From the NCBI GenBank assembly GCA_024704765.1, contig JAKMXF010000110.1:620001-684000 (forward strand): DNA of 64,000 bases. The letters are read 5' to 3'. Of this stretch, positions 34,684-60,400 are shown one piece after another. The notes under the pieces were generated by a model. The model saw only the letters and a program-made list of their open reading frames with translations, searched no databases and was not told where the DNA came from. Origin of the DNA: Oopsacas minuta. Its lineage: Eukaryota; Animalia; Porifera. The stretch's first letter is position 1. Each line of letters starts with the position of its first letter. The translations under genes and the position numbers were made by a program.

Positions 34684-37600
34684 TTAATAGTCAGATTCAG
34701 AGCTTGGTTTATCGATTAAATTCTCATTTTGTAAATCCATAGTTTCAATTTCCATTTCGTTAGTTCCAATATCAGTTACAGTTATAGTTTCATAATCTCC
34801 ACAAGCTTGTAGGTTTACTTTCTCAAGCGTCTCGCGTAAAATGTCTACACGACCTGGTGGGATCAGAATCCCGACCTCCCTCTCCAAATTAGTCGTGTAT
34901 ATTCTGACAACCTGTATATGGAAATTTCCTGTGACGTCGCTTGCTAGTGATTTACATAAATGCGACCACACGCCAAGAACAGACCCACTTAACACGTATT
35001 TAGTTGAGGAACGCAGGCCAACTTCACAAGGACTATTCGTGGAATCTAGTTTGCATTGTCCATGTAGATATCTGTGTTTGCACTTAGTAAGAGATTCTGT
35101 GTATAGATTAATCCAGTGAGGTTTAGCTTCATCGAGAGTGACCTGAAAATTAAAATATTTGATTAAAGTGTCATAAAAGCTGAATTCTATATAAAGTGCA
35201 ATAATATTTGTAAACAAATTCACGTAAATACTATAAAGTATCTAATACAAACAAACAAACAAACAAATAATAAGTGTTTAAGCCATATGAATATTCTAAA
35301 GTATTAATTGAGCTCAAATCTCCAAGCTTCAAACTCTTCGACAGTAATACCGTAAAATAGTTTATTGACACAATTGCCACCAACAAGTGGATCTACATAG
35401 TGGCTGTATGGGTTTGTAGGTGGCAGAATATTGTGGCATAGCCAGCAAAAATGCGTGCCACAATTTGAACAGTGCACTTTTGAACAACCAAATATTTTTT
35501 CGATATGTATCTTGCACTTTGGACACTTTTTCGTATTTTTTTGTAACCATAACTCATCTTCGATATCTGAACTCATCTGCTCTAATACACTTTTGCCATA
35601 TTTCCTTTCCAGAAAAGCTTTTTTCATAGAATTCCCTTGTTTGTATTCTTGTATAATTTCTTTGAATTTGTCCTTACTGAACACACAGGGCGATACTCCG
35701 TGATACACACGTCTACATTTAGGACAGAAACAATATTTGCAAACAAGACAGATCGCCATTGACTTATCTGCCATTTGTAGCTCGGACGGAGAGCCACAAA
35801 TTGTCAGAGGGCAATAGACAATGTCCTCCATTTCCTCAAGGGCCCGTTTAAACAAAAACTCGTCGTATCGGGCGTATAAATCTTTATTGACACTCTGTGA
35901 CAGAATTTGATTGTTTATTAGAGAATTGCAGTTTCCTTGAGGACACTGCAATATTGAAATTGAAAATTCTTGGATTTTTGTTGACAAATATTTTGATAAA
36001 CAAATTTTACAAAATGAATGTTGACACGGCCGTATTTGTAAACATTTTGTGCCCGGTAAATATTCCATACAAATAGCACAATAATGTTGTTGTTGACAAA
36101 ATTCTTCATATAATTTAGAGGTGTTGAAATGTTCAACTATTTCCAAAAGATCTGAAGACAAAATCCCATCTTGGATTGCTCGTAAGTCGTGGCTTTCCTT
36201 TGGGTATTCTAAATTGAGTGTATAAGGGAATTGTATGTCCAGGAATTGGAATAAATCGTTTGTTAAGAACTGGAACCAATCGAAGAGAACTGTGCCACCT
36301 CTGTTCTCATACCAGATTGTGTCGAGTTTGCGACACAGTTTAGAAAGCTGTGAGAAATTCAACCATTTGGAAGTGAGGTGGAATGAAGGACCATAATTTG
36401 ATGGATAGTTATTCGGAAATTCAAATTCCAAAATAATCGGCGGCAAATAGTTGAGTGAAAATTCTGTGAAAATAAAATCCAATTGTAATTTTTCGCTATC
36501 CAAACTGGTTCGGACATACTTTTTGGTGAAAATCCTAATTTTCTGTGGCGTTTGGAAATGACATGGAATTTCTAAAGTGGCTCTAATTGTCGGTGTTAGC
36601 TGTATTATTTTAAGAATATTGTCTTGACCATAAATTGCCTTCAAAGTGTCAAGTTCTGAATGCTGTAATTCAAAATTGCAATCCATATCTCTAATTATTA
36701 ATAAAAATATGATTCAATAGAGTACAACTGGCAGAAGGTACACATGGTCAATTCACTTAACTTACCAAACATTGCAAACAGCAAATATAACCAAGGCAGG
36801 TGGAACAACGACAGCACCTCCCTTCTCACCGCTTCCTAGATTCCCCTGAAGGGGGGGGAATGGATAAGCTGCCATGAGCGGATGGAAGATGACCACGAAA
36901 TGATGCCATGAGTAGACTTTATAGGATGTCACCGATAATAGTGACCGTTATGGACATGTTTGACTGTATTTTATTGTATTAAATGGCCACAAATACGACA
37001 CATTTCGTTACGAACAGTTGAAGTTGAAAAGGAGAAATTATAAAGGATTAAAGTATCAAGTTTCCCACTATAGGCAGATATTTGTAAACACAGACAAATT
37101 GTACATATTTCAATTCTTTCCTCTAAACGGTTGTTATGGACTCTACCAAAAATGTTTACGATGCTATTGTCGTGGGGGCGGGTGTTGAAGGAGCGGCTAC
37201 TGGTCTATTTTTAGCCAAGAAAGGTGTGAAAACGCTCATTCTAGAACAATTCGGCCTATACCATACAAGAGGGAGTTCGTCTGGAGAGACCAGGATTATT
37301 CGAAAGGCATACACCGAAGAGATATATGTTTCTATGATGGCTGAAGCGTACAAACTGTGGGAAGAAATCGAGATGGAATTCGGTGATAAAATATTGAACC
37401 AATGTGGTGGACTTATTGTGGGAATGAGCGAAGCATCGAAAGAGGAAATTATAAGACGATCAGAAACAAATCTTGAAAAATATCGGATACATTATGAAAT
37501 GCTTGATGGGAGAGAAATAAGAAAAAGATGGCCAATTTTGAGGGTCGAAAATGAAGTGTTGGGATTATGGGAACCCACAATGGGAATGCTTTATGCCAAG

Positions 37601-40600
37601 AAAGCAATCAAGGCAATGTTAAGCCAATTTGTAAAGCGAGGCGGGGAAATACAGGAATATAGAAAAGTGGTTAAGATGGAACAAATGGGAGAGAAAATCG
37701 GACAGAATATTCTAAAAATAACTACACATAACAAAGAACAATTTTTCTGCAAGAAGCTAATCCTCTGTACTGGACCATGGACTAACCACGTGCTGTCACT
37801 TGTCAATTTTAAAGTGCCCATATCACCGGAAAAAGTGATTGTACCATTCTGGAAAATTCTAGAACAAAATACTCGCGGAATTTCATTGGCTGAGATTCCT
37901 GTGTTTATATTTTGGGGATCGAAAGATGTCACATTTTTCAATGTTATGCAAGAATACGAATATCCAGGTTATCTTAAAGTGGCATTACGTGGTTCAATAG
38001 CCTGTGACCCAGATAAAAGAGATTCCGTGGATATCGACTCAATAACAGTGCCCAAATTGGCTCAGTTTATTACTAACACCTTTCCATATGGCATGCTCGA
38101 CACATCTTCTCCAGGGATAACGGAACAGTGCATTTACACAATGACACCTGATTCAAACTCAATCATTGACCAACATCCTATTCATAGTAACATCTATATT
38201 TGTTGTGGATTTTCAGGACATGGATTCAAACTGGCGCCTGTTATTGGTCAGCTGATGTCAGATATGCTATATGGAACTGAAACCAAGTTCGATTTGAAGC
38301 ATTTTAGTTTGAAAAGATTCAAGAAGGCTAAGCTATAGTTACAATACTCTCTGTTTTGATTTTAAATTAAACAAGAGGATCATATGATTAAATTACAGTA
38401 AGCTCTTATATGGACAATTTGGCTTATAGTATGTATATGTTAGATCTAGGAACAAGTTCTAAGCTCTAAGCGATAAAATCTTCACAAATCTCCATGAAAA
38501 AGATAACGAAGTGTTCTATCCCATGATAATACATTGGAAATCGCCTAGCGTAGATTGAGGCACTGGAAGGAGCTACAGACTTGAATTTTGGTATGCAGGT
38601 AGGATACCGTATATCAAGATATCACCTCAAACATCTAGGCGAAATCTCAAAAACTCCCAGAGATATGTGGCAAAATATCTTGACCTATCAGATGGGTGCA
38701 TTTCAAATGTACAAGTTACATAGCTGCTGGTATTCATTCTTAATGCCTATTTGAGACTGTAAATTGATTGGTTAGGGAAAATACATTACATTTGGTCCTA
38801 ACAACTAAATATACAATATACCATGTGATTATGGTATAATTGCTACACGAGGGATACCTGGAGTGTTCGATGCCCGCACCGCAAGCAAGGAAAGCATGCT
38901 TGTATTGATAATTTCCTGGAAATTTGTATATATTCATTACTGACATACTAAGATATGTATGTAACTAGAGCATAGAGGATGAGTCGTTTACATCATATTT
39001 GTGTATTCAGTAATTAGTGCAAGGCCAGATGAATTTACATAACACCCCACAGGGCAAGATGATTTAGATGTTTACAATGAGAAATTGGTTAATAGCAAGG
39101 AATTATTATTATTTAGAATTCAACACAATACATTTAAGATAAATCTACATTTTTGAGAATTACATTCTTCTCTAAATCAAATTCTTTGAGGACCAAATGT
39201 TTTGAAAGTACTTCCTTGGCTTTATCGTCATATCTTCTTTGTGAATACTTTGAAAAAATATGTGAACATTTTAGATAAACAAGCAACACAATCATAACAA
39301 AAAAGAATAAACATAATATCGCGAAAAACACAATTGTCGGTATAACAACATATGTAAAAATTTGATTTTTAGCTAAACAATCAACAAATCTTAGCTGAAA
39401 CGCCAAAACAATACTCAAAAACAAGAAAAACTTCATCTCAGAATTGATTCTATAAAGTATACTTTCTGAAAACAGATAATTCTCCTGTTTAAATAGAAAG
39501 CACGCTGGTGTTAATTAATTAAATTTGAAATGAGCATATGCTAAGTTTTTGATAAATATACATAAACTCATCCCACAATGAGTTGGTCTACATCATGAGT
39601 GAACTCAGGAATTCACTTAGTTTAACATTTTAACAGGTAAGATATTCTACGTTAGCTAATATTAAAGTGACAATCTTAACGCTTACAGAAATTTGAATTT
39701 GATATAAGCAAATCATTGAGGTGTTAACTGTAATTATTGTCGATTGAGATTTCGTGAGACACAAATATGATAACAAGAATTGTGTAATTAAAGCGTTAGC
39801 TTATATCATTAATTTGAATGTAATTCAATTAGCGTCTACTAGAATCATTGAATTAATGGAGGGACGAAATATTTAACGTCGTAGCATTAATATTCCTTAA
39901 ATCATTGAATAATAGCTGTCAGTTGTATTTTCTATATTTACGCGCCTAGTTTGGCAACTCTTGGCCGAAATTTCATGCGCCTAAACATCAATTAGGAACT
40001 ATAAACAAGCGCCAAATATGTCTGAATAAATCTTAGTTCCCATTCCAAGGAATTTCCCAAATATACATGAGTATATTATGGATCTAATAATTCTACGGTG
40101 TAACCTCCACAAACGGCATGCCAGGAACGCCGAAAAATGTTTCTCCGTTTCTACCAAATTCTCAGTTTGTAGAGGTTCATTTGTTTGGGGCTAGCAATTC
40201 GCTCAATGTATTTTCAACCCTTTTTCAGAAGTTCCCCGTTTCCAAAGCCCCGTATATGGAAGTTAGATTGTTGTATTAAATATACTGACAGTATTATTGA
40301 AATATCACATCATACATAAACATACACACATACAAGAATTACACAGTTTCCCCAGTATGTTCATTCTCATACAAATCAATAGCAATGCTGTAAGTAGGGG
40401 GTCTTTCCGTCTCGACAGGTTGTTCCTCTGGTTGTTCACTTGTTTGTGTATTTATTTGCATTTCCAGATCTGTGATTTGTCGCTGATACATTTGTCGTCG
40501 TATACACATTAGTTTTGCGACACAAAACACGACAATACAAAGTATAAGAAGAGTTACAAGAGCAATTAATAAGTTGGGGACGGAAGTCGTAATTGCCAGT

Positions 40601-43600
40601 AATTCATTATGAGTGAGAGCGTGGGTGTTTGTCACGATGGTAAATAATAACAATAATGTGACTGTAAACAATGGTTCCATATTGACTTCAATTTTGTATA
40701 TAATAATGTAATTGAGGATGAAATATATATCAAAAGTTATACCTACTTTGGCCACAAACACAGAATTAGTTGAGTAAACAGTTTGTAGGGAAGTTTGATT
40801 AAATATATGGCAATTAATGGATAAGATAAATGGTATAATTAAAATTTGTAGAAAGCACTTTAGATAAAAGCTAAGATTGTTAAAATATCATTTATCAGCT
40901 GACATCGTCTATGGTGACATTTCCTTGTTATTTGTAATAATTACATTACTAAATTCATTGATTATGAAGTAGATTTATTATGGACAAGATTGTTGATCCC
41001 ATGGGGCAGTCGTTCTCAACATTTTACACACGTGGCACCGCTTTGGTCGATTTTATGGGGTCCACGAACTGTATGGGACTGTAATGCGAAACCCCGAGAT
41101 CGCTCATGTTTTGGGAAGTTCGACGGCGAATATCTTCTGCTACTTGTCCTTTTGTAAAAGGAATTTTTGGCTTTACTTTAGGCCACTGTTAATGAGAAAC
41201 TTTTTTCAGCTCCACATTAGATCCACCTGAACATGCATGCGGGCGGGCACTTCATTATCATTATCTCATTATTTTGTGAGTTATCAGCTGGAAAATTGGT
41301 TCATTGACTTTATTCATAGAAATATTCTAATTACTAAAGTCAAATTTGATATGAGAATAGGCTGAAACTATGAAAAGATACTTCTATTGTACCCTACCCA
41401 GTTAATACACCTTGTAGTTGAAATACATTGAGTAAATGGTGAAATATCGACAATAGTAGTGAGGTAGCCAAATCAGATGCGGGCGGTGGAGCTGAAACCT
41501 GTTTCCAACTAACAGTGGCCTTATTTAGGTTATGAAGCCTTACCCCTCAAAAGTAATTACGAATGATACTAGCCTTTAATAACTGTACATACAAATGCAT
41601 GTATGCGTTCATAGTGGCTGTATGCAGAGAGCTAACATACTCAATATAAGTATGATTTACATTGTGTATTAGAAAGAAAGTTTTTCAGAAATATGGCAAC
41701 CGCTTCTACCGTTCAACCGTTCTTTTACGATGAGGATTGTACGTCAACAGTTGAGATATCGATCTCCTGCTCTAATCTACCCAAAATGGACATGTTCTCG
41801 GATTCAGATCCATTTATAACCGTGTACCAAAAGGAGCAGGGAACTTTCAAGAAAATCGGACAAACTGAGGTTAAGCAAAATACGAATAATCCAAAGTTTG
41901 ATAAAGTATTCCAAATGCAGTATCATTTTGAGGAAGAACAGATCCTGAAATTCGTATGTGAGGATCATGATAGAATTGGTAAGCACGATTATATCGGCGA
42001 CGTGCAGGTGCGGTTGGGCGAGATTGCCAGCTCGGGGGAACCGGTCGAGTTTAACTTAAAACATGAAGGAAAACTTCGAGGCAAAATACAACTTTGTGCA
42101 GAGGAAATGAGCGGATTGAAAGCCAAAATAATTTTCAAAGTTCAGTGCCAGAAGTTGGATAAAAAGGATTTTTTCGGGAAATCTGATCCATATTTTCAAA
42201 TTCGTAAGATCCGCGAAGGGAAACACCCTGTGGTTGTATTTACAAGTGAAGTTTATAAGAACACTCTCAATCCGACTTTCAAACCGTTCGAAATTGGCAT
42301 GTTTATACTAAGTTCTGGAGATGTAAATACTCCGTTGAGATTTGATGTTTTCGACTGGAACTTGAATTCCGAACCTGATCCTATCGGTTCATTCACGACT
42401 TCATTATCAGAGATCGGTCGAGGAAAGGAATTTCCAATAATTAACCTTGAAAAACAGCGTAAAAAAGGAACAAAGTATAAAAACTCGGGTATCTTCCAGT
42501 TTTTGGACGTCAAAACAGTGCCAACTCACACATTTATAGAATTCCTAAAAGGTGGCCTTCAAATACAACTCATGGTGGCGATAGATTTCACAGGGTCGAA
42601 TGGTAACCCAGCGGATCCGAGATCCTTGCATTACATTGGTGCTACAGATAACGAATACATAGAAGCAATCAAGAGTGTCGGTAACATTCTTGTGCCTTAC
42701 GATAGCGACCAGAAAATTCCAGTTTTTGGGTTCGGCGCCAAACTGCCACCTCACTATGAAAAAGCTCATCACTTCTTTCACCTGAATGGATGTTCTAATC
42801 CTGAAGTTGAAGGCGTCGAAGGGATTTTAGCAGCTTATAGACAGACACTCGCCATGTGCAGACTGTCTGGACCAACGAAATTTGGTGATATTCTCAAATA
42901 CGCAAAAGACTCAGCGAAAAATCAAGTGGAGGAATACAGTTATACAATATTGCTTATCATCACAGATGGTGTTATTGACGACATGACACTTAGTTCCGAT
43001 TTGATAGTGGAATCATCCACACTGCCACTTTCTATCGTAATAGTAGGAGTAGGTGGCGCCGATTTCTCAAATATGCATAAACTGGATGCAGATGAAATAC
43101 CATTAGTTCATTCGAGAACTGGGATTAAAATGAAAAATGATATAGTCCAATTTGTACCCATGAGAGAGGTCAAAGCGAAGTCACAATATTTCAATCTAGC
43201 CAAAGAGGTGTTGGAGGAGGTGCCAGGACAAGTTACAACCTATATGAGGTGTAACAATGTGGAACCAAGAACATCAATCGCCCGGGTATTCAAAACACCC
43301 TATGGGGAACCCGAAGCTCCTGCATATCCAGTCCCAGGCCCCTATAGTAGTGTGCCGGCGGTTCAGCAGGGTTACGGGACACCTTATCCGCCAGGACCGC
43401 AAGGATATCCACAGGGGTACGGTTACGGTGCTCCGCCGCCCCCTGCCCAAGGGGGAGGATACCCTCCTCATTATGTTACTCCATCTGCACCCCCTTCTAA
43501 TTGATACTATTTATAGATGTGTATATACTAGAAGTATTAATTGAGTTTGAAATGTAATTATTAAACTAATATATACCTGCCAACGTCCCCTATTTTGGTG

Positions 43601-46600
43601 GAAGGTCCGCCTTATCGGACATGTTTTGCCGTCTATTTCCCGCCAAAAAGCTTAATTGTCCCGCATGGTGCATTCTAGACTAATGCTAAGAGATTATTGT
43701 AGATAATAAACAAACGATTTAGATAAACATTTATAAATAGGATATAATCTAAAAATAGTATCAGCAGAGTTCAATATGGAAGTAGAACCTGTTTACAGAA
43801 TCAGTACACTTAGATTGGTATATCGATTCAGTTTCTGCATCTATGTCCAGTCTAAGGTTATGAGTGTTATTGATTGTCTTCTCTTTACCCAGCTGATCAA
43901 TACTGCTATACTTTAGTATGCCAGGTGATATACAGCTGTCAAATTCTCCTGATATCCTACGGACACGGAACAACACCAGGTTATCCTTTACCCATCCTAC
44001 CAGCTGTAAATGGTATCCTTTGATGTAGAAATCAGGTCCCACCATCTCCCCCTTACTCCCCGTGATCTGGTGACCCTTCAAACGCCACTCTGCACCCTGG
44101 AAACACATTTTCAGTGACTCTACGAACTTTGAGATATTAGGTATGAAAACAATCGCGGAGATTTGGCATTTCAAATAATTTTGGATTTCTTTCAGTGCCA
44201 AATTTTCGTTCTCCAAGTGTGCCAGTTTCATTTCAAAGTGCTGTGCTTTACTTTCGATTTTGTGATCGGTCATTTCATTAGTATTTGCTGACTGAAAAGA
44301 ACATCCAAATTTTGCGTAAGGACATTTGGCACTGAATTCGCACTCCGCAATATGAATTTCCAAATTTCCCAGTCCTCCAGTCCAGTCACACCCTGATTTA
44401 CTGAACGGACAATTCCAGGAAAATTTTTCGATACTCTCCCGCATAACAACCGATGGGACAGCTAATTCCTCATTTTCACAACAGTTTCTACAAGTTGTCT
44501 TTCCCTCTAAAACTAGTGCTTCACGCAAAATACCTTGACAGACTGGACATGTGACTAATTCCACTCTAGATGGCAGCTTGTGGAGCATATCTTTCTTATA
44601 CCCCCTAACCGATTTTCTTGTCCCTCTTGTCTCGACAGTTACACAAATAGATTCCTCTATAGGAGCGGCTGAAGCGGATGATTGTTGGTTAGTAGCCATT
44701 TAAGTTGAGGCATAAACTGAGACTGTATTATGCATAATTGCCAAGGTTATATTAGTAATCACTATCACGTGATTCTAATAATACGACTCACAAACAAATA
44801 TGATGTCACTTCAATTTTCCGCAGTATTTATAATATAATAGGCTGATAAAGTCCATAAACCAATTTGGATCTCAGATTTCATATTTGTTCAAACTTGAAG
44901 TCATACCGATTGGAAGATAGCGTGGACTATAAGGTTTGTTGTTGATTTCATAGGGAAATAGTTGGTCCACGGGATTTTTTAGAGTGAAGGTTCGATCTAC
45001 AGTGTACCTGCATAAACGGGTTGACAGCGACGCCGAAAATGCTACCCAATTCTGCCAAATCCGGCCAGGGCTGCCGTGGGAATGGAATGGGAATTGAATT
45101 TCCATTCCCATGACAAGTGTGCAAATCTTCCTTTTGTGGAGGTTCATTTGTATTTTTGATTACAAATATGTATTCATGTTATTTGCATCCAATTACACCC
45201 AAAACTACATAGTTTTCTAATTAAAATCTTTACAAACAAACATACAACAATCCTGTTTTAATTATATAAATATACACTTGTCAATTTCCCCGATTTTGCG
45301 AAGAGTCCCGCTTTTTCGGATATGTTTTGAAGTTTATTTACACCAAAAGTTGCCAAAAAGCTGAAATGTTGTTGTTGCATTCCAGGCTAAAGAAACTTGC
45401 TACGTCCCGCGATGTCCCGTTTTAGGCACAAATTGGATAATGTACAAAGAAAGGTCAACCATTGGTGCCTTCGGATCAAAAATGTCAAAGCGCACTTCTG
45501 AGATTATTGTAGATAATAAACAAACGATTTAGATAAACATTTATAAATAGGATATAATCTAAAAATAGTATCAGCAGAGCTCAATATGGAAGTAGAACCT
45601 GTTTACAGAATCAGTACACTTAGATTGGTATATCGGTTCAGTTAGTACACCTATGTCCAGTCTATGGTTATGAGTGTTATTGGTTGTCTTCTCTTTACTC
45701 CGCTGATCAATACTGCTATACTTTAGTATACCAGGTGATATACAGCTGTCAAATTCTCCTGATATCCTACGGACACGGAACAACACCAGGTTATCCTCTA
45801 CCCGTCCCACTAGCTGTAAATGGTATCCTTTGATGTAGAAATCAGGTCCCACCATCTCCCCCTTACTCCCCGTGATCTGGTGACCCTTCAAACGCCACTC
45901 TGCACCCTGGAAACACATTTTCAGTGACTCTACGAACTTTGAGATATTAGGCATGAAAACAATCGCGGAGATTTGGCATTTCAAAGAATTTTGGATTTTT
46001 TTCAGTGCCAAATTTTCGTTCTCCAAGTGGGCCAGTTTCATTTCAAAGTGCTGTGCTTTACTTTCGATTTTGTGATCGGTCATTTCATTAGTATTTGCTG
46101 ACTCAAAAGAACATCCAAATTTTGAGTAGGGACATTTGACACTAAATTCGCACTCCGCAATATGAATTTCTAAATTCCCCAGTGCTCCAGTCCAGTCACA
46201 CCCTGATTTACTGAACGGACATTTCCCGGGGATGGTCTCGATGCCCTGCCGCATAACAACCGATGGGACAGCTAATTCCTCATTTTCACAACAGTTTCTA
46301 CAAGTTGTCTTTCCCTCGAATACAAGTGCTTCACGCAAAATACCTTGACAGACTGGACATGTGACTAATTCCACACTAGATGGCCGCTGGTGGAGCATAT
46401 CTATCTTATACCCCCTAAACGATTTACTTCTCCCTCTTGTCTCGACAGTTACACAAATCGTTTCCTCTATAGGAGCGGATGATTGTTGGTTAGTAGCCAT
46501 TTGAGTTGAGGGAAAATATCTGAGGTATAAATAAGGCATTATTATGCATAATTACCAAAGAATTACTCATATTAGTAATCAATGCGCATGTGATGCTAAA

Positions 46601-49600
46601 AATACGAACTTAATACTAATATGATGTCATGTCAATATAGAACTTAATACTAATATGATGTCACGTCAATATAGAACTAGCAGTATATATGTATAATAGG
46701 CAAATAAGTTCCATAAACGAATTTGGATCTCAGATTTCATATTTGTTAAAGTAAAATCCTACTGATTGGAAGAAAGCAAGGACTATAAGGTTTGTTGTTG
46801 ATTTCATAGCGAAATTGTTGGTCTACGGGATTTTTCAGAGTGAAAGTTCGATCTAGAATGTAACCTGCATAATGGGTTGACAGAGACGCCTCATAATGCT
46901 ACCCGTTTTTGCCAAATCCCCCACGGCAAGTGTGCAAATCATTCTTTTGTGGAGGCTCATTTGTATGGGACTAGGAATTCGCTCTATTTATTTTTCACTC
47001 CGTTTCCAGAAGTTTCCCATTTCCACAGCTCCGTTCGTGGAGGTTACACTTGTATTTTAGATTTTCGAATATTTATTCTTGTTATTTTCCCCCTATTACA
47101 CCCGAATAGCTAAACTAACATTGACTTATTTTAGCTATAAAATGGATGTCGAATTCAGAGAAATCAGTGATATACAATTCAAAGAGCTGGTATGCGTATC
47201 TAGACAAGATACAGGTCACGGAGGGTACAAGAAAGATCTACTGTGTCAGAATTTCAGTGCCCTAGAAGAATCACTACTCCTGTGTCCGAGCTGTAACGGA
47301 GTAATGCGAGACTCAAGCGTTTGGGAAGGTAAAACAACCTGTCATGACTGCTGTGAGAATACAACCAACTCTGCATGCTCAGTACTGCACCGTAAAAACA
47401 TAAATGAACTTCAAGTAAAGTGTCCCCTTGAAGAAGGAGGGTGTCCTTGGAGTGGCAAACTGTGTGACATCAAGAACCACCTCGCCCTTTGTAAATACCT
47501 CTCGGTTGAATGCCACTATGCTAAATTTGGGTGCCGTTTCAAGTCGGTTATCCCAGGGGAGGTTGCGAGACACGTCACAGATTCGATGTTCGAACATTTG
47601 GAAATGCGAATGAATTTGATCGAATTAGACAACGCACAATTACGTAACCAAAATACCTCGATTAAGCTACAACTCAATGCTCTGATGAAAAAAGCACCAA
47701 TTTCAAAGTTCGTAGAGTCACTGAAAATGTGTCTCCAGGGTGCAGAGTGGAGTTTGAAGGGTCACGAGATCATGGGGAGTAAGGGGGAGATAGTAGGACC
47801 TGATTTCTACATCAGAGGATATCATTTACAGCTGGTAGGACAGGTAGAGGATAACCTGGTGTTGTTCCGTGTCCGTAGGATATCAGGAGAATTTGACAGC
47901 TGTATATCACCTGGTACACTAATGTATAGCAGTATTGATCAGCGGAGTAAAGAGAAGACAACCAATAACACTCATAACCATAGACTGGACATAGGTGTAC
48001 TAACTGAACCGATATACCAATCTAAGTGTACTGATTCTGTAAACAGGTTCTACTTCCATATTGAACTCTGCTGATACTATTTTAGATTACATCCTATTTA
48101 TAAATGTTTACCTATATTGTTTGTTTATTCTTTATAATAGATTATTACATTAAGATCCCCTTTCAATTGTTTTCAACCTCTCCCATTCCAGACCGCCCTT
48201 CGGGTGTGTTAAGAGACCAAATCAATACCTATGTAGTCTGGATTGGGACAATAATAGACACATACTGGGTCCATGTTAACGAGAAACTTGTTTCAGCTGC
48301 ACATGATGCCCATCGAAGCATACGGACGGGTAGCGTTTCTTTATCATTATCTCATCAGTTTATGACGTTATCATAACGCAAAGTAGACAATTCAGGAAAT
48401 TTCAATGATTCAACTTGTAAATATGTGTAATTAAGCGTGTTAGAGGAGATTTGTGAAGATATAATCACTACTATTCACCCGTTAATTAGTAAATATATTG
48501 TGTAGTGAATTTCACTGATAAAATGGTGAAATAATAACAATACTCATGTGACAGGTAAACTTGAGGAATTTGATTTATTTGACACAAATAATGTTACAAC
48601 AAAGATTCATATTTAGCAAGTCGAAGGTCAGACCGTAATATCTCTTCATTTTCAATCTCATTCTCAGTCATCTCAACCTTCTGAACGAACCAACGTAATA
48701 TCTTGTATCTTCTCCCAGATGTAGTCTTACCATATGAATAAATAGCCGCGTACAACAAGCAGAATATTATCGTCCAGAATATACTGCAAATTGGAACTAA
48801 CATGAATACAGCCCAAACTCCATGCATTTTGTATAAGAAGCGTAGATTACGGATAATATATATGGAAAATTATATGACTATAATCTTTTGAAGGGAATCA
48901 TTCGAGGATAACTATTCGTAATTCAATGAAAAATGTAGGGAGAATGGTAACTATGCAAAGATAAAATGGAATGTTTTAACTGAGTAGCCGTATGAATGTA
49001 ATGAAAAAATCCAATCACAGATAGGTGTGAAAAGGTGAATATATACCACACATAATTTGTAGAATATCAGTGTCCGTATATACACACACAGGTTCTGATG
49101 CGATCCTCTAATACGTAAATCTATATACTATATTAGAATATGTATAAGTGCTAATTCATCTAATTAGTTCCATCTAAGATGATATTAATCTGGAACTGTA
49201 ATATTTCAATTTAACTGATGACGTCAGAAAGTGAAAAATTGGTTTATGAAAAGTATAAAATGAAAGAAGTCAAATTCTATAAAGGAATTGAAATTCTGAA
49301 TTTTTAAGGAATATTATTTACAAATATGGATCAACAAAATACTATAAATGAGAATTTAACACCTAAAATTTCCAAAGAAAAATCGGGTAGAGGAAAGAGG
49401 GGAAAGAGTAAATCAAAAAGGAGAATATCTTTACATCCAGTGTCATTTGTATTCATGGCATGTAAGTTATAATTATATCAACAAACAGCTGTGAAAACAT
49501 CACATGTTGATTAGGTTAAAACAGGATTTGATTTGTTTGTTTGTGTTTTTAGGTGTACATCTCTCAGGGGCGATTGTTGATGCAATTACATTTATATAAC

Positions 49601-51334
49601 AGGACAATAACAACAATACCTCAATTATTTAGCATGTCATGAAGTGAATACTTTGAGAATATCTGTTATATGTATTATTTGTTGTTAGATTAAAGTATTA
49701 TGTGAAACAAGCCGCGAATTCAGGGGCGGACCCAGGATTGTTCAGAGGAGACCTGAGTTGAGCGTTACGAGTACTTTAGGGAAGTTCAGGGTAATTTCAA
49801 TATCTCATCACACTTAATAAACATAAGGGGCTTCAGTCCTCATCCTCCACTTAGATCCCACCCCAGAATCTCGAGGCTAAATGTGTTCGCATCATTTGTG
49901 TACCCAATGGCCGACGCCTGCTTCAATCCGTCTATACTAATAGTATATTGTATTATATTAGCTAATATCAGCGCAAGAGACAATGCACAATACTGTACGC
50001 ATAAGCTCAGATAAGCTACATTACATAAATCTATGTGACTGATTAAAGCAATATAGCTAGCAAGTTATGAGTTATAAAATGAATTGAATTTTGATCAAAC
50101 TTTAGAATAATCACATCAATGGCACAAATTTCAAGACAAACGAGTATAACAGTTGCTTCGCCGACACAAAATAGTGGCACAACTCATGTGAGTATCGCCA
50201 TACCACCAGAAAGTGGCACGACTCCAGATGGCAAACAGGTAATTAAAGAGAAAGGCCTTTATGAGAAAGTGAATGATAAAGTTGATTGGGTATTCTACCC
50301 AGTTGATAAAAGTGAGTTAATCTAATTAGACAACTTTTGTTCGATTTTTGTACAGAATTTATTGAGTAAATGATAAGAGCCAGAAGCTTGAAATTTGTAA
50401 CGTATGTGGAATGTGATAAATATAAGAACAAAGTATAAGATCTGAAGCGATATCTAAAAAACTCTTTCAGATAGGTGTCAAAATGTCTTGGCCTATCAGA
50501 TTCGATGGTTTACCAATTGGGATCATTTTGACCAATCAAATTCTAAGCTCTAACACAGCTTAATTAGAACGCAAAAAATGGAAAAATTCCTATTTCGCAG
50601 GTCGCAGTGCAAGTAGCGAAGCTTGCTTGTGTCGATGAAAACGAACGCGGTAATACGATTTTCCGGAAAAGATCATGTCTCTACAATGGTAACGGTATTA
50701 CTCAGGTTAATACGAACCTAAGTTAAAGCGAATACAATTAACCGTCCGTTGATATTCATATTAACGAGGTAATACTGCATGAATATTTACAGGTATGGAG
50801 AAGATGAGAACAGCGCTGAATATCTCAAGATTTTTCACTAAAGCCTTAGCATTAAAAAGATTTCGTACAAAGAAGGGTAAGATTCGGGTAAGGGTAGGAT
50901 TCTATAAGAGTACTGATAATCAGGATAGAGTAGAAGAGCTCCCAGAAGAGGAACAGAGAGAAATGAGCAATACAAGAGCTGGATTAGAATTGTTCACTGC
51001 TTGTAAGTACACTTACAAAGTATAAAAATATGTTAATTGGGATCAGGAAGCTAGGGGTTTATCCAGCTGCTTGGACGGTGAGAATCAAATTAGATTGGGA
51101 CAAGAATTATTATGCTATTGGTTAGTCAGGAACTTGTTTCAGCTCCACAGTCCGCATCAAGTTTACCTGCCACAGGAATATTGTTATTATTTACTAACTA
51201 ACGGGTGAATAGTAATCACAGACTTCCTTTAACACGCTTAATTAACATATTTACAAGTAAAATATTTGTGTGTATTTTTAGGTTTGGAATTCTCGATCCC
51301 TCTCATTGAGCTTCTTCAATCAATTTGACAAGCC

Positions 51335-51415
<81 letters not shown>

Positions 51416-54400
51416 AACAGCCCAGTAATCAATATTTTAGCATCATATATGTCCATAAATTGTAAAATTTGTTTGTAACCTGTACGTAGCTATCTTTGGT
51501 AATAATTATAACTTTAGTTGTATATGATGTGTCATATGACACGTACAGATTACTACAGGCAACTCCTGTTATACCAAACACGGATATATCAGAAATACCC
51601 GCTTATACCGCAGTCTGAAATTGTACAAATAGGGTCCCAAGCGATAATCACTTCGATATCGGTTTTATCGAAGTGAGTATCGCGGTCCCTTGAGCTTCGA
51701 TAAAAAGGAAGTTGACTGTACTTACTTGGCTGTTTTTGACTAAACTGATGTCATTATTAAGTGGATACAAACTTTGTGATTATAGCTTATAATACAACTT
51801 AAGTAATGCTGGTATAGACTATTAGGAGGAGACAATAGGCAATGAATATTGAAACATACTTAAACGTAACGCATATAATGATTTGTTCATATTAGAGACA
51901 CGAGACGTAGAGATATATGAGCAAAGGGAAATAAGGCATTACATGCTAATTATAATATTAGGTCAGAGAGAAAATAGCGATGGAAATTTGATATTTCATA
52001 AGGAATAATCTCAATAGGAGAATGGTAGTGTCTCTTAAATAGAAGTAATTTTAGATACAAAAATTCTCTAAAATACCAGATAATTCAACATAAAAGAAAA
52101 GAAATTAAATCTTTTGTGAGAAACATACCAGAAAAGTATCCAGATAGTTTCTATCGATTTACATTCCATATTCTTTGTTATATGAATGCATAGAGTATAC
52201 AAGGAAATTTAGGGCTATGTTCCTCGCATATGATTGAAAACAAATATATTATCTGGAGCGGATTCGGGGAGGCTAAGGGGGTCTGAATAGAATCATCCTA
52301 GACACCCGTAAAGTGCTCGTAACGCTCAAGCTCAGTTCTCCCCCTTTGAGCAATCCGTCATTGCTTTTCAGGGTCAATTCTGAAATTTTGGGATCCATTG
52401 TTATCATAGGCCTGTCCTTCTCTAATTATATATAACAAGGATGAGATCCCGTAAATAACGACCCGGTAGAAAAGCAATTCACAATTTGATCTAATATTAA
52501 ATATTAGATGGCAGATTCTGACAGAAAGACAGCAGGAGATAGTCCAATCAGTGATCAGCTTACAAACACAGAAGGAACAGCTGATACTAACCCTGGAGAT
52601 TCATTGGTTGAAATCAAGATGGAGGATGTCATTATTTCCACAAATGCTGTAGACAACCCTGTAAATTTATTGGCTGAAGTACAAAAGGAAGAGGTCGTTG
52701 AGCCTAAGGGTGCAGCGACCCCTGAAATCAACCCTGGAGAATCATTGGTTGAAATCAAGATGGAGGATGTCATTGCGGAGGCAGACACACCAAAAATTAT
52801 AAATAGAGAGCAAGAGGTCATTGGAGATGCGAGGAATGAAATACAAGAAGAAGTCTCACATATACTAAATAAAACAGAGAAGTTGAGAGAACAAATTTCA
52901 AATATTAAAGCTGAAGCAGAAATAATAACAAAGAAAGAAGGTAACTTGGTGTAAGAGATAAAATATATTCAACACCTTAACAATTCGTAATATTATAATT
53001 TAGATCCTAAACTATCTGAAAAGAGAAGTAAGAGTTTGGAGGAAGAATTGAATGAGAAAAAAGACAGCAAAGCTGAGGAAAAGTCAAACACGAAAAATGT
53101 AGAAAAAGGACTTGACATAGCTGAAAAAGGTAATTACAACATGAACATAGTGTCGGTTTATAGAGGTGTCTGAAGCAAGCAGGTTCCATTTTAAGTGAAA
53201 TAATTATGTGTATGTAGGTCTAGGGGTAGTAGATGCAGGTGTTACTCTATTGGGGGATATATCAGGGCTGTCAGAAGATGACGGAGGCTTGAAGGGTGTT
53301 AAGGACGTGATAGAACTAGGAAAAGCTACTATAGGCCTTGGAAAAGCTCTCTCCAAAGATAAGGAAAAGGAGGATGAGACGAAAGAAGAAAAGAAAGACG
53401 ATAAAGCTGGGCAAACAGAGAAGGGACTAGACATAGCAGAGAAAGGTAAATACGAAATTTAACACTAGCCAAATAATGATAAATTGTATTTATACATGTG
53501 TAGGACTAGGAGTGGCAGATGCAGGTGTTACTCTAGTGGGGGATATAGGAGGAAAGGAAGGAGGTATGAAGGGTGTTAAAGATGGGATAGGACTAGGAAA
53601 AGCTACCGTAGGCTTTGGAAAAGCTCTCTCCAAAGATTCTAAAGACAAAAAAGAAGACAAGAAAGATGACAAGAATGAAGATAAGAAGGACGATAAAGCT
53701 GAGCAAACAGAGAAGGGACTAGAAATAGCAGAGAAAGGTAAACACGAAATTTATGCAATGCTCAGAATACAATTTACTATACGTTTGCAGGACTAGGAGT
53801 GGCAGATGCAGGTGTTAAACTAGTGGGGGATATAGGAGGAGAGGAAGGAGGTTTGAAGGATGTTAAAGGTGTGATAGGAATTGGAAAGGCTAGCGTAGGG
53901 CTAGGAAAAGCTACTGTAGGCTTTGGAAAAGCTCTCTCCAAAGATTCTAAAAACAAAAACGAAGACAAGAAAGACGACAAGAAAGAAGACAAGAAGGACG
54001 ATAAAGCTGGGCAAACAGAGAAGGGACTAGAAATAGCAGAGAAAGGTAAATATTAATATAGCTCAAGACAGGATGTAAGAATTACTCTCGATTAATAAGT
54101 ACACATATGTATATAGGTTTAGGAGTGGCAGATGCAGGTGTAACTCTGATTGGGGATATAGGAGGAAAGGAAGGCGGTATGAAGGGTGTTAAAGATGGGA
54201 TAGGGCTCGGAAAAGCTGCCGTAGGCTTTGGAAAAGCTCTCTCTAAAGATTCTAAAGACAAAAAAGAAGACAAGAAAGATGACAAGAAAGAAGATAAGAA
54301 GGACGATAAAGCTGAGCAAACAGAGAAGGGACTAGAAATAGCTGGGAAAGCCCTGGACGTAGGAGGTGCTGCTATAGACTTAGCAGGTGACATAGCAGGA

Positions 54401-57400
54401 AATACAGAAGGATTAACTACAGCAAAGGAGACAGTAGGACTAGCTAGTGCAGGTATAGGATTGACGAAAGCTCTGTCAGATGCAAATAAAGAGTCAAGTG
54501 GAGGAGGAGTCTTTGGTAGTTGTCCTTGCAGTATTTTATAAAGAGAACAGAGGTTAATTAATGATTGTATAGTGTTTTTATTTATAGCAGATGCTCTGAA
54601 ATATTTGTATATAAATCATTTGTTGTTGTTTATTAGAGAAAAATAGGAGTCATGATATGATTTATCCAGTAGTTAGCTAATATGTGATAACAATCTTATT
54701 GTGGACACATTTGATTAATCATTTATCACACCCTCAGCATGCTAATTCGGGGTAAACAGGGATCGATTTTGACACTTTCAAATGTCTAACACGAATATTT
54801 ACATTCAATTTGAAATTTGTATGTAAATACCAAATCTAAATATTACCAAACTTGAAATTATAACAAAAAAATAATAACAAGCTTTGAACAGTCAATGAGG
54901 AATCTTTATATCCCATAGTTAGCAACGAAAAATGACAATAGGCATGCCACATATGGTAACATAACCATTAAAACAATCATAAGGTATTGTCTCATAAATT
55001 TCTGGTCATTTAGAAGCCAAAAATAGCTAAATACATTGCAAACTTTACAATAATGGAAATATCATTGGAAGTTCTGGTGAGAAACCTGGCAGTTTGTATT
55101 TGATAAGAATAGTATAAAAGTGGATATATGTACAAGTGTGAAGATTATTAATATGAGTCTAGCTTGTACATATGTTTGTTATTTTGGTATTCCTCTACTT
55201 GTGACGATCATTTGTTTACCATCTTTTGTATTTACTCTATTGTGTATAATTTGTTTAGTTATGAGAAAAAGGATTTTCAAAGCAAACAGCCAGATGAAAA
55301 ATGAGAAGAAGGATCAGGTCTCCGAAGCGGATTCTGAAGATAGATATGTACCTATGTCGAAAATTAGTGTGAAAAAGCCAAAACCTGAGGTTCCAGTAAG
55401 GAAATTCCGTGTTGACAATTCTAAAAGTGGCACAACTGAAGGTGTGAACCACTACGCACCACTTATGATGATTACAAGAGTACAAGGTACACGAATTGAA
55501 AGTAATGAGGTGTATTATGAAGTTATGCGAGGGAGAGTATGAATATTTGATAATGACGATTTGTATTCTTGTATAATTGAGAAATGTAAATAGATTTATG
55601 GTTACAGACTGGATTTATTCGTTCCCCCAGAGGTGTTAAGTGGCTAATTCCATAGTTATGTTTATCTCCATACTTGTGGCAGAATTCATTTCAATATGAT
55701 TATTAGATATTAACCATGGATGGAGGAATTAGTATATTTATATTATTCTTACCAGCAGGGACTAGAACAACATCCAAGCAGATAGACTATATGTGCCATC
55801 CATGGTTACATAACAAATAAGCGTATAGAGGGAACAAAATGCATAAATAAAAATAAATATAAAAGTAAACAAGCAAATAATAAACAACTATTCAAGTAGT
55901 AGAAGTTTGTTGGGTTGTAATAGCCATCGCCTTTTTCTTATGGAAAATGTCCCATAAATATCCGACAATAATTGCAGAACTACAAAGAGTAACTGCAATA
56001 CAAATCAGCACTGATAATGTTATAACAATAGCGAATGCAGGTGTCTGTGTGTAATCAGCTGATTGTGCATGAATGGTTGGGATGGAAGAGAGTAAGAGCA
56101 TGATAATTAGTTCCATAAATACGTGTTTGTTTGTTGATTATATTATTGTATGTATTTGTTTATATTTCTTGTAGTTATGGACAGATGAGAATGAAGTATA
56201 CGAACATATTTTGGCCTTCCGTTGGTGTTCGTATTAACGAGGTTCCTATGGGTACAATTTCGACCCCTTCAGGGGCCGTTTGGGCCAGTTAGTTATTGAT
56301 GGAAGGGGACTAATATTCGGATCAATACGAAATATTTATACAAGTGGTTCACAAGCTTTGTCTTCCGTCGACCCATATATGTACCAATTTAACATATACC
56401 GTGTGGACCCCCTGCTGTTGTCTGTGGATCACCAATGGAGTCATGGACTCAAGGGGAGGAACCATATTAGTATACTATAAAATGTAAACACAATATTTAT
56501 CAACAGACAAAAGATAAAATGCCAAAACACAAACAAACAATCCATGACATCAACAAATAGTTCCTTAAACATTACAATCAGACTTGTTTGAGTTTACACC
56601 TTCATAAGCTGGTGGTGCCTCTTCAATCTGCACGCTGGAAATGATCTTCTCCTGGCCAGCACCGGGGGGAGTTTCCTTCCAAGGGCTTTGTTTATGGAAC
56701 CAGGCACAATACACACATATACATATAACTGGAAGAGAAATCAATCCGATACAGATTAGGATGGGTAACACGAAGTATGTGAAATAACATACCAAACAAA
56801 TATCTCCCGAATAGTCCGCAGAAACTATCCCGGCACTGAACAGGGACAGACATAGTAATATGAATATCTTCTCCATTTTGTGTGTTTTGATTTACTTGTG
56901 TTGATTTTTATAAGCGAAGCTATAAATGCATATTGCACAAGATGGTAGTTATGGCTGGAAAAGAGTTGATGTGTGCAGATGTAGGTTAACGGTTGTATCA
57001 AATTTCTAACATGTTTGTGTCGTAATATTTACATGTAAGACTTCTGTAATTGTGTCTACAGGATGTTTTCTAGACAGAATTTGAGTTAATTTGATTAGCA
57101 ATTCACACCTCTCCCAGGGCGGAAGGAAGGAGTGGGGGTGATAAGAACTTACGCCTATATGCGAGGTATCCTTACACATTCCATTCGACAATTAAATAAT
57201 GGTTATTATTGATAGATAGATAGGCTACCCACCCCTGGATATTGGTCTAGGTCATTTGAGGTACTCCTCGCCGAAGTTGGCTAATTCATTGAAAAATTGC
57301 AAAGAACAATGAATCATTCAAATCATAAATATCTAAAAATTTCTAAAATTACAAGATGTATTAGCTAACATGGCTGTAATATACATCATAACACTTCCAT

Positions 57401-60400
57401 CTACAGTTGGTTTCAGTTTGAAAAGATGTAATGGAATTTATTTCAAATATCGAAATTTGAATTTTCAGTAATTCATGTACAGAGATGAAACCGGTCAGAT
57501 TTCCATTTTTCGACCGGTTCCATCTCTGATTCATTTGTGTACAATCTTCCTTAACTGTAAATAAATCATCCAAAACTGTTTACTATACAAGATAGCATAT
57601 ATTCTTCTTGTTTAGTAAACATATAAATAAACCTTACGTGTAACAACAAACACTCTAAATAAAGCAATAAGCAATATGCTATCTAACACCAATAATGGAC
57701 TATACAATCTCCGCTGTCGTTGCTGGAGTATGTATTTTTGTGACAGGGTTTTGTTGCATGAACTGTATTTTTGTGTGTGCAACACATTATTTGTGTAAAA
57801 AATGTCAAACAGGGAAGGAGAACAAGAGATTGAGGCAGGAAGCAGTAACAAGGGACAAAGAAAAGAGGAGAAGTAGGGTTATAGAGAATGAGAAGAGAAA
57901 CACAGAATACAATCGAGCTCTACAGAATCAGTTTTATACAAGAAATAATGAAGTTGGTAAGTTAAATAATAGAATTTGTCTGTAACTGAGACACAGGCGA
58001 CACAAACGGCCAGTCCTTGGCGTGGCTGTTTATCTTATCCAAGCGAAATAATATGATTATGTTTAATATTTTAGGATGGAGGAGAGATATATCAACGAAC
58101 TCTCAGCACTCTCAGATGGCGTTACCCCCCAGATATGAAGATGCATTACAGATTGATGATAGATTTGAAGAGACCATCTATTTGAAAGTGTAATCTCTGT
58201 TTAATAACTATTCAGATTAAATAAATATACCATTATTGGTAGTAACAGATCAGGGCTCTAGTGTTTATGAAGCAGATCTCTCTGGGTGCAACTAGAGATC
58301 CCAGAGCGAGGAGGCAAGGATGGATATTTGCCTCAATATAATGGTGATTACAATAGGAAGATGAGGCAACTGCATCTTCTGCCTCAATGCTAGTTACGCC
58401 CTAGAACCTGTACCGGTACTTTTTTGGAAATACACTACACAAATCTCCACAAAATTTCGACATTTTTAGATATTCCCAAAATTCCAAACTGTTCGTGTCC
58501 GTATTCGGATAATACGATGGCTTCTGTCGACACAAATAATAAGTGACAGAGGGTGTAGTTAAGTTCCATCACAGGCTATGGTTACATTTATACAGATAGA
58601 ACTCGAAAATGAGACCGGAGAGCCTTTGATAAAGCATTCAATAACTTTTGTAATAAACAGAAATGGAACTCCAACAAACCTTTCTATATGTTTGTTGTAG
58701 ATCAGAATATCTCATTAATGCATTAACTCTCCCAATATTCGGTCTGTACACCACGAAAGCTCCAGGATCAGTTGTAGACAACACAAGGAGACAGTAGAAC
58801 TTCCCCTTGACACCTTTTAAGCTGAGGTACAGTCCCTCGCTCTCTGATACAAGGGTGCTATCCTCCTGATGAGGGAGTCTAGTCAATACTTCCTCCCAGG
58901 ACAAGCCTCTCTGTACCCTGATTGTACTCAATCGTGTCGTGCCTGTCCCAAAAAGAGGGTCTCCTAAAATGTGAGATCATAAATTGGATATAAATGGCAA
59001 TAGCGTCACATTTCAACACCCCCCCCATGGCGTGTTAAGTGGCCAAATGGCTAAATTTCTCCCTCACGGAGGTGTGGACACAATTAAAAGGTGTCAAAAT
59101 ATATAAAGTGATAACTAATAAGAATGTTGTAATTGTCAGCTAAACAACAAAGCACAAAAATCACAAAATCGATTAGAGCTACATAGCTATGCCTCCATGG
59201 ATTCGTCAGGACGATCATGTGGATTAATAATACCCGGAACAGTCAGCTGTAAAGTTCTCTTCTCCTCTTGGGCCTTACGGATCTCCGTTTCCTTCTCTTC
59301 AGTGTAGAGTTGGGAGTCGTCTTCCCCAGAGAACTCTTTGATTTGTACAAGGAAGTCTCTGAGATGGTCTTTGAAGACAGAAACATTACGGTTAAAAGAG
59401 AATAGTCCTTCTATTGTTACTTGTATTTGAGTAGGTTGTAGATGCGAATAAGCTGTTTGGAAGAGATTAGCCAGACGTTCCTTAACAAATCGGACGTTGT
59501 CGATTGAAGGGTCTTGTGTATGCGTTACTGGTTCGTATAACGGGACACGAATAACTCCAGCCTCTACTATATGGAATAAATACGCCAGTATCGTGCATTG
59601 CATTGTTAGACCATGTGCGTGGGAGAGGTCTGTAGCCACAGAGAAGAGATGGTTAAGTAAATCCATATAGTATGTCTGATAGAACGCTTGGCTTGCTTCC
59701 AACGGCTCGACGTTCTTTAGAAGGTCAAATAGGATAGATAGACCTACTTCGGCAACATTACGCATAGTGTGTTTAAAGGCCCAGATAATTGAATCTAAAA
59801 ACAGCTTGAATTGTTGTGGTGGAATGTGTAGAAAAGCTTCAAAGCAATTTTTGTTTATTGAGAACAACATCTTGAAGAAGTTTATTCGATGTTCTGGATA
59901 CTGTTCTAGATCTTTGTTTATCATTTCAAGGGTACATTCAAAAAGGGAGTCAAGGATTTGAGGAATATCTTCCGTCACAGAGGTTTCTAGTTTATCTACA
60001 ATAGCTGTGACACAACTTAACACCTCTGGTTCACGCGCCTCTGCCACATTTTTGTTATAATCAAGAAGAATAGCACTCAAAAGTGGCGGTAGGAAGTTGG
60101 TCCGCACCAGCTGGGGGTCTTCAGCCCTAGACACCCAGGATGAAATCAGTTTAAGCGTTTCCTTCTTAACCGTACGGACGGATCGAATAATAGGATCTTT
60201 CATTATAGAAGGCCCGTTGGCATTAATTGCTAGTGAAATATTCTCACTTAACACCTTATAAATATTCAGCATGTCCATGTATATGCGAGCAAGCTGTGTT
60301 ATAAATGCGTGACCGATTGCAATACACGCTCGGACGTTTGTTTTGAGTATATGAGCGAGTTGTTTGATAATTTCTGCTTCATTCAGTGTCTCTATATCTC

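Follow-up and report, generated by a model that had tools for sequence, protein, structure and literature searches.

Organization of the SBNO locus in Oopsacas minuta

The investigated stretch of DNA, a window of 64,000 nucleotides from the genome of the glass sponge Oopsacas minuta (contig JAKMXF010000110.1, positions 620,001 to 684,000), contains on its minus strand the 3′ part of a gene of the strawberry notch (SBNO) family, whose final two exons, here termed A and B, are separated by an intron of 23,537 nucleotides that is filled with other genes (Table 1, where all coordinates refer to positions in the window). The N-terminal P-loop NTPase domain of the encoded protein (AAA_34, PF13872) is expected past position 64000, and the gene enters the window within its Helicase_C_4 region, in an exon cut by the window edge whose approximately 53 residues are 64–74% identical to eight of nine full-length SBNO proteins in tblastn searches. 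The exon that follows matches positions 164–240 of Helicase_C_4 (PF13871) with 25.4 bits against a cut-off of 30.5, with only the last part of the domain lying in the window, and Helicase_C_4 ORFs (open reading frames) were also called in the orthologous loci L006 and L007. After one further exon, the gene continues across an intron of 4.3 kilobases (kb) into exon A, where joining 63264 to 58963 restores a glycine codon that is split into G and GA.

Exon A ends in phase 0 with the sequence …TAT AGA AAG/GTTTGT (last base 58680) and exon B starts, equally in phase 0, with GTC ACT CTC (first base 35142) after …AATTTTCAG, which includes the acceptor TTTTCAG. The exons flanking the large intron are located on the same strand, are bordered by GT-AG sites of matching phase and together encode a contiguous protein.

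Table 1. Annotated features of the SBNO locus, listed by position in the 64,000-nucleotide window. L-numbers and ctg83133 denote related loci, with L001 originating from assembly ERZ25766962, L006, L011/L012 and L015 from ERZ25071281, ctg83133 from ERZ25072730 and L007 from Vazella pourtalesii.
Feature	Position	Strand	Evidence and remarks
SBNO last exon B	34684..35142	-	end of alpha/beta domain (PF25373), C-terminal tail and stop
SBNO gene-filled intron	35143..58679	-	23,537 nucleotides, GT…AG, phase 0
RNF14-like RWD-RING-IBR ligase, 460 residues	35304..36686	-	Pfam RWD 2.8e-18, IBR 2.8e-14
FAD-dependent oxidase, DAO family, PIPOX-like	37136..38338	+	Pfam DAO 3.4e-48, full length
sm39k small ORF	39137..39436	-	hydrophobic N-terminus resembling a signal peptide; 39–49% identical in L002, L005, L011/L012
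orf40k, no assigned function	40342..40680	-	45–53% identical in L005, L011/L012
Copine, two C2 and copine domain	41693..43504	+	Pfam Copine 5.4e-67, C2 3e-33
TRAF-like gene 1	43761..44699	-	weak Sina-type match; ctg83133 homologues
TRAF-like gene 2	45571..46539	-	weak Sina-type match; ctg83133 homologues
TRAF-like gene 3	47142..48074	+	weak Sina_ZnF match; at the corresponding position of ctg83133, four TRAF-like genes with 47–57% identity
sm48k small ORF	48597..48827	-	39–43% identical in ctg83133 (inverted there) and L015
Spliced orphan, two ORF pieces	50095..51022	+	both pieces 58–60% identical in L015; one piece in ctg83133
Glycine-rich repeat gene, about 5 repeat exons	52508..54541	+	repeats conserved in L006/L015 and ctg83133
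sm55k small ORF	55153..55539	+	41–51% identical in L003, L004, L006, L007
sm55.9k, 74 residues	55892..56116	-	conserved in L003, L004, L006, L007
sm56k, 103 residues, hydrophobic stretches	56565..56876	-	50–60% identical in L003, L004, L006, L007; inverted in ctg83133
sm57k small membrane-type ORF	57695..57985	+	conserved in L006, L007, L008
sm58k small ORF	58017..58193	+	conserved beside exon A in L006, L007–L010, ctg83133
SBNO exon A	58680..58963	-	first part of alpha/beta domain (PF25373)
SBNO intron holding exportin-1	58964..63263	-	4,300 nucleotides; donor G/GT at 63264/63263, acceptor TTTTAG/GA at 58964/58963
Exportin-1/CRM1, intronless, 1081 residues	59187..62432	-	ORF 62432-59190; six CRM1/exportin Pfam domains, E down to 1.8e-124
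SBNO exon, end …MEEFLG, phase 1	63264..63428	-	matches residues 1–19 of Vazella transcript P0003
SBNO intron	63429-63496	-	68 nucleotides
SBNO exon	63497..63726	-	splice sites read; tblastn collinear
SBNO intron	63727-63841	-	115 nucleotides
SBNO exon, Helicase_C_4 region, cut by window edge	63842..64000	-	donor CAG/GTAACC; sequence read

Exons A and B encode two halves of a single domain

The assignment of both exons to the same gene is manifested in their relation to the SBNO alpha/beta domain (Pfam PF25373, 119 positions), which is located at the C-terminus and by which membership of the family can be recognized. Exon A covers positions 1–75 of this domain with a score of 35.2 bits, ending on the final residue of the exon, and exon B positions 76–119 with 43.3 bits, beginning at its first residue. 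There is neither a gap nor an overlap between the two, and both scores exceed the curated cut-off of 24. In line with this assignment, a phmmer search with exon B against 1.84 billion representative sequences returned many SBNO proteins, and in tblastn searches nine full-length family members align collinearly with the segments 63999-63841, 63728-63480 and 63462-63262 and with exons A and B, without leaving any query residue unaccounted for. BLASTP alignments continue unbroken through the junction, with the predicted sequence QQTYRK/VTLEEARPHW aligning to KKYKK/VEMEEAESHW. Neither exon has a second copy in the window at an E-value of up to 50 (tblastn). Exons A and B thus are two halves of the single alpha/beta domain of one SBNO gene. 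The sites, phase and coordinates of this junction and the size of the intron are those proposed in an earlier note on this DNA, which had cited the motif KKYKK-V..A..HW of SBNO1, now confirmed by a continuous alignment, and which had likewise found no closer copy of the last exon.

Both exons are conserved in related genomes. ORFs corresponding to exon A are 74–93% identical in seven related clusters, each ending with …QQ[TA]YRK followed by GT, and exon B is 72–79% identical in five. Exon B does not contain an ATG near its 5′ end and, since it is nevertheless conserved, it must be spliced in.

Genes contained in the SBNO introns

Genes within the large intron were identified from stop-to-stop ORFs combined with Pfam searches, with the small ORFs and spliced orphans representing calls at the level of ORFs. 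The 16 genes found in this way are evenly distributed between strands. Eight share the minus strand with the host (the RNF14-like gene, sm39k, orf40k, two TRAF-like genes, sm48k, sm55.9k and sm56k), and eight are antisense (the DAO/PIPOX-like gene, the copine, one TRAF-like gene, the orphan at 50–51 kb, the glycine-rich repeat gene, sm55k, sm57k and sm58k). Together, their ORFs span 51% of the intron, which in this respect resembles an ordinary gene-dense chromosome. For each of the 16, tblastn found a match in one or more related genomes, and the full-length Pfam architectures of the RNF14-like, DAO and copine proteins, and of an exportin-1 in the adjacent intron described below, are those of independent genes. 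Our count agrees with the earlier proposal of about 16 guests with half of them in sense orientation, as does the distance of 161 nucleotides between the stop codon of the RNF14-like gene (35306-35304) and the host acceptor.

The RNF14-like gene is 67% identical in L001, L005 and L011/L012, where it is located directly upstream of exon B, and the copine occupies the same place with 68–84% identity in L002, L011/L012 and ctg83133. The PIPOX-like gene is present in L001 and L011/L012 and was not found in ctg83133 or L002, with no homologue detected in the orthologous introns of the assemblies ERZ25072730 and ERZ20067936. In ERZ25766962, the homologue (L001:3392-7609) is found in two pieces with an ORF combining a MULE transposase and a RING domain (4186-5787) between them. 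Its split in one genome and the failure to detect it in the introns of two others suggest that this guest seems dispensable.

Other guests vary in copy or repeat number. The TRAF label is based on weak matches to Sina-type zinc fingers in the window and on homologues in related loci that are flagged as zf-TRAF. Three such genes reside in the intron (43761-48074) and four, on alternating strands, in ERZ25072730 (ctg83133 record, 341562-347989); a TRAF-like ORF of 796 residues is found at another spot in ERZ25071281 (L015:4974-7364) and many further genes of this family populate the first 22 kb of the window. The glycine-rich gene contains about 5 repeat units in the window, about 6 in ERZ25071281 and seven in ERZ25072730, indicating that the repeat number changes between species.

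A further nested gene, which is absent from the account of the locus in the earlier note, encodes exportin-1 and is found on the host strand within the 4.3-kb intron preceding exon A, with its stop codon 223 nucleotides ahead of the acceptor of this exon. Both of the last two SBNO introns consequently hold same-strand genes that end near the host acceptor, at distances of 223 (exportin-1) and 161 nucleotides (RNF14-like). Orthologues of exportin-1 with 89–90% identity occupy the same place in L006 of ERZ25071281 and in L007 of Vazella. In two other glass sponges, the gene was not found within 10 kb upstream of exon A, where the search only returned an XPO1-like scrap of 51 residues (L003:2890-3042).

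Conservation of the locus among glass sponges

The separation of exons A and B by a large intron was found on single contigs in two other assemblies. On ptg000095l of ERZ20067936, the last base of exon A is 898103 and the first of exon B, on the same strand, 846992, which defines an intron of 51,110 nucleotides, and in ERZ25072730 (ctg83133) the respective positions of 321838 and 360963, again on the same strand, enclose an intron of 39,124 nucleotides. The latter was recovered as a whole and contains, in the order of the window, sm58k, sm56k, sm55.9k, sm55k, the glycine-rich gene, the orphan and sm48k, followed by the four TRAF-like genes, the copine, orf40k, sm39k and RNF14 before reaching exon B. 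This intron differs from that of the window in the inverted orientation of sm56k and sm48k, and neither sm57k nor PIPOX could be detected in it. In ERZ25071281, the genes follow the order and strands of the window from exportin-1 through exon A to sm48k, and other contigs are collinear in the stretch between the copine and exon B. Its contig bearing exon A (ctg49395, containing L015/L006) ends about 4 kb past the sm48k homologue, and exon B was observed on ctg49004 and ctg49161 (L011/L012), which extend at least 26 kb and at least 78 kb further upstream. A TRAF array of very large size, a break in the assembly or a true rearrangement could each account for the split between contigs.

At the level of the exons, the donor AAG/GT and the acceptor YAG/GT are placed at the same codons in five genomes, with flanking intron sequences that cannot be aligned by eye. 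The gene order at both ends of the intron is conserved in every related locus with a recovered flank, which comprises five other sources. Nonsynonymous divergence (dN) of the exons ranges between 0.03 and 0.17, or up to 0.21 for exon A, with a synonymous divergence (dS) that exceeds 1.2 or is saturated in all pairs except for exon A of L006 and L007 (dS 0.47). The resulting dN/dS ratios are between 0.03 and 0.14 where estimable and between 0.03 and 0.08 for exon B where measurable. The conserved order, in combination with low dN at saturated synonymous sites, rules out that the arrangement reflects a mis-join or a pseudogene. The comparison with related species that had been proposed as a check of the locus therefore finds both the exon split and the order of the guests preserved in other glass sponge assemblies, and the nest can be regarded as old and conserved within this group.

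Splicing across the gene-bearing introns

In a search of a collection of 5.8 billion proteins with exon B, we identified the sequence P0003, which is assigned by EukProt to the glass sponge Vazella pourtalesii. P0003 is a Trinity ORF of 222 residues that reads …EEFLG/DPLF…SDLQQTYRK/VTLEEARPHW… and that contains both joins predicted for the window. Its genomic counterpart P0009, an ORF of Vazella that contains exon A, continues into intron sequence, unlike P0003. P0009 is located on L007, a 15.6-kb scaffold of a metagenome assembly, to which P0003 aligns with 100% identity in residues 1–17 (5521-5571) and 18–113 (9950-10237), thereby skipping an interval that bears an exportin-1 of 1079 residues. 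The 3 kb following exon A on L007 contain homologues of sm58k, sm57k, sm56k, sm55.9k and sm55k and do not contain exon B. The joins in P0003 and the layout of L007 together indicate that exons are joined across both gene-bearing introns in the mature RNA of Vazella. A chimeric assembly of P0003 is unlikely, since a chimera would not hit conserved GT/AG sites and restore the domain in frame.

Sequence features related to read-through

A host polymerase that continues to exon B would encounter the 3′ ends of the same-strand guests, for which the earlier note had suggested suppression of intronic polyadenylation, trans-splicing or a regulated truncated SBNO, and we have inspected the intron for polyadenylation (poly(A)) signals and for features that might aid its transcription and removal. 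Expected numbers of hexamers on the host-sense strand were obtained from second-order Markov simulations. AATAAA occurs at expectation both in the window intron (19 compared to 19.1 expected) and in the 39-kb orthologue (40 compared to 39.9), whereas ATTAAA is depleted in the former (4 compared to 16.3, z = -3.2) but not in the latter (40 compared to 36.2, z = +0.7). With AATAAA at expectation and the depletion of ATTAAA missing in the orthologue, we rejected these counts as evidence of selection against poly(A) hexamers. In the entire window, ATTAAA is much rarer on the minus than on the plus strand (18 compared to 49). For many genes of the window, including SBNO, exportin-1 and RNF14, no canonical hexamer was found within 600 nucleotides of the stop codon, and the local poly(A) signal may thus be other than canonical.

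Searches for further features were equally negative. The strict recursive-splice motif YAG/GTRAGT has no match on the host strand of the 23,537 nucleotides, and the first and last 200 nucleotides of the intron do not pair better as RNA than random internal pieces, with 63% of the controls being as good. An acceptor-like motif shared by the regions upstream of the guest start codons was not seen by eye, and scans of the window with Rfam and for tRNAs did not yield any matches. No robust sequence feature that aids read-through was thus identified, and intronic cleavage might instead be suppressed in trans, as is known of the U1 small nuclear ribonucleoprotein (U1 snRNP) in other animals.

Interpretation and alternative explanations

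Domain continuity, the spliced transcript of a related species and conserved synteny support a structure with one SBNO intron containing about 16 genes, half of them on the host strand. We consider it likely that the locus constitutes the real 3′ end of a single functional glass sponge SBNO and that its intron is removed in cis and accommodates around 16 independent guests. In such a scenario, an ordinary phase-0 intron within the alpha/beta domain would have turned into 23.5 kb of normal chromosome rich in genes. The host pre-mRNA would be transcribed over the entire interval and its intron presumably excised by conventional GT-AG cis-splicing, with the nested genes acting as separate transcription units. 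On its way, the polymerase would have to pass eight same-strand 3′ ends, which, by analogy to animal cells in general, might proceed by inefficient or suppressed cleavage inside the transcribed intron, as mediated by U1 snRNP, rather than by a lack of sites. The nest would probably persist because rearrangements in its interior would disrupt SBNO.

Several observations weigh against this interpretation. The evidence for splicing consists of one Trinity transcript from a species other than that of the window, which would fit cis- and trans-splicing alike. In ERZ25071281, exons A and B are found on separate contigs. Finally, the host-sense strand of the intron bears 23 canonical poly(A) hexamers, and read-through thus requires some explanation beyond the sequence.

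The same hexamers bear on the question whether the locus would mainly produce a truncated SBNO, with most host transcripts either cleaved at the same-strand 3′ ends that first follow exon A or retaining the start of the intron, and with the full-length join being minor or regulated. Reading past exon A (…TYRK) meets a stop after 17 codons, and two of the 23 hexamers, AATAAA at 58205 and 58067, are located about 470–610 nucleotides into the intron on a host strand where this signal is not avoided. Still, strong purifying selection acts on exon B in all species (dN/dS 0.03–0.08), the exon completes a conserved domain and cannot be translated on its own, and the join is contained in the Vazella transcript. 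The selection on an exon that completes the domain but has no start of its own implies that full-length SBNO must matter, and we thus consider a predominantly truncated product unlikely.

Other alternatives invoke trans-splicing, for which intergenic examples are provided by mod(mdg4) and lola in Drosophila and spliced-leader operons by nematodes and tunicates. As in these systems, several genes of one strand lie within a single transcribed span of the SBNO locus, and a spliced leader has been described for a glass sponge. The locus differs in that half of its guests are antisense, that genes are spaced by kilobases compared to about 100 nucleotides in spliced-leader operons and that no common acceptor motif is visible, and in A. 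vastus a leader was present on only 4% of long reads. An operon resolved by a spliced leader does not fit the locus, with guests distributed 8 to 8 between strands, spacers of hundreds to thousands of nucleotides and no common acceptor recognizable by eye. There is little probability in our view that the same-strand guests (exportin-1, the RNF14-like gene, two TRAFs and four small proteins) would at least in part be produced from the SBNO primary transcript by cleavage and spliced-leader trans-splicing, or that the last exon would be supplied in trans by read-through from RNF14. If either were true, the conserved nest would constitute a co-transcribed unit and not a passive neighborhood.

In its specific form, intergenic trans-splicing would combine a pre-mRNA containing the SBNO body up to exon A with a separate pre-mRNA carrying the last exon, the second perhaps a read-through product of the RNF14-like gene. 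In four of the five genomes seen, RNF14 immediately precedes exon B on the same strand, and neither AATAAA nor ATTAAA occurs in the 600 nucleotides that follow its stop and extend through exon B. A spliced mRNA by itself is compatible with this route and spliced-leader machinery was reported in a glass sponge (PMC10282587). Conversely, exon B and its acceptor are preserved in ERZ20067936 although RNF14 is missing from 10 kb of upstream sequence. The exons of each resolved genome are found in order on one strand of one contig, an arrangement that is required for splicing in cis but not in trans, and cis-spliced introns of such size are routine in animals, which makes this route highly improbable.

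That the arrangement is an artefact, either by a mis-join or inversion, as the earlier note had considered, or as dead fragments with an intact SBNO elsewhere, can be practically dismissed: although the exons are distributed over different contigs in one related assembly, the same split is found on single contigs in independent long-read assemblies of two other species, the genes at either end of the intron keep their order, purifying selection acts on the exons and the Vazella transcript is 100% identical to the orthologue of the locus.

Relation to known nested genes

Our preferred explanation of a cis-spliced SBNO intron hosting independent genes is in accordance with the genome organization of the glass sponge Aphrocallistes vastus, where a genome of 80 Mb with short introns and 12,409 single-exon transcripts contains 2432 nested genes (12.4%), 'many of which are conserved', including the nested glassin (Francis et al., 2023; PMC10282587). 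The same study detected a spliced leader on about 4% of long reads and describes the microsynteny among glass sponges as extensive. The SBNO nest belongs to the same class as those described for A. vastus and O. minuta, with mostly single-exon guests residing in introns of a compact genome with otherwise short introns, and it is likewise conserved (PMC10282587). The part of that report considered here provides genome-wide counts, without mention of the SBNO locus, the number of guests per intron, their strand or a mechanism, and it lists a mean intron length of 516 bp for one scaffold of A. vastus, about 45 times below the size of the SBNO intron (PMC10282587). The SBNO nest is thus a large and well-supported case of a published genome-wide feature and not a new kind of system, and the arrangement is less exceptional than assumed in the earlier note, as nested genes have been published genome-wide in glass sponges. 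New are the accommodation of 16 guests in one intron, their even strand split, the exportin-1 in the adjacent intron and the demonstrated conservation of the entire nest.

Classic multi-gene nests are found in dunce of Drosophila and in intron 27b of human NF1, which contains EVI2A, EVI2B and OMG. Similar to SBNO, these cases combine several independent genes within one cis-spliced intron, with host and guests transcribed separately. They comprise three to about seven genes, mostly antisense, in genomes where long introns are common, whereas the SBNO intron stands out by its size in a compact genome and has half of its guests on the host strand. A process by which a polymerase might traverse such an intron is 'telescripting', in which U1 snRNP suppresses premature cleavage and polyadenylation within introns and for which we know of no study in sponges. 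By analogy, telescripting would allow the polymerase to pass poly(A) signals in sense orientation without their loss, which would fit the absence of AATAAA avoidance at SBNO.

Automatic annotation would probably divide this locus, for which our analysis provides a well-documented gene model, as exon B has the appearance of an orphan ORF in every related assembly searched. A nest of 16 genes, half on the host strand, that stays intact over a divergence saturating synonymous sites turns SBNO into a test locus to study how a compact genome of an early-branching animal keeps the polymerase going past same-strand intronic genes and whether the conserved microsynteny of guests is enforced by their host genes.

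Further features of the region

Runs of GTTT or GTTTGT begin or lie within several introns of the window. A (GTTT)n repeat fills most of the 68-nucleotide SBNO intron (63496-63470), similar runs are located at 35260-35245 and 58679-58674, and the donor of exon A reads GTTTGT in three of five species. Immediately downstream of SBNO, an ORF of 183 residues that does not belong to a Pfam family (33492-34040, minus strand) has counterparts of 56–61% identity in the equivalent place of three related genomes (L001, L005 and L011/L012), where they are followed by exons of ribosomal protein S8e.

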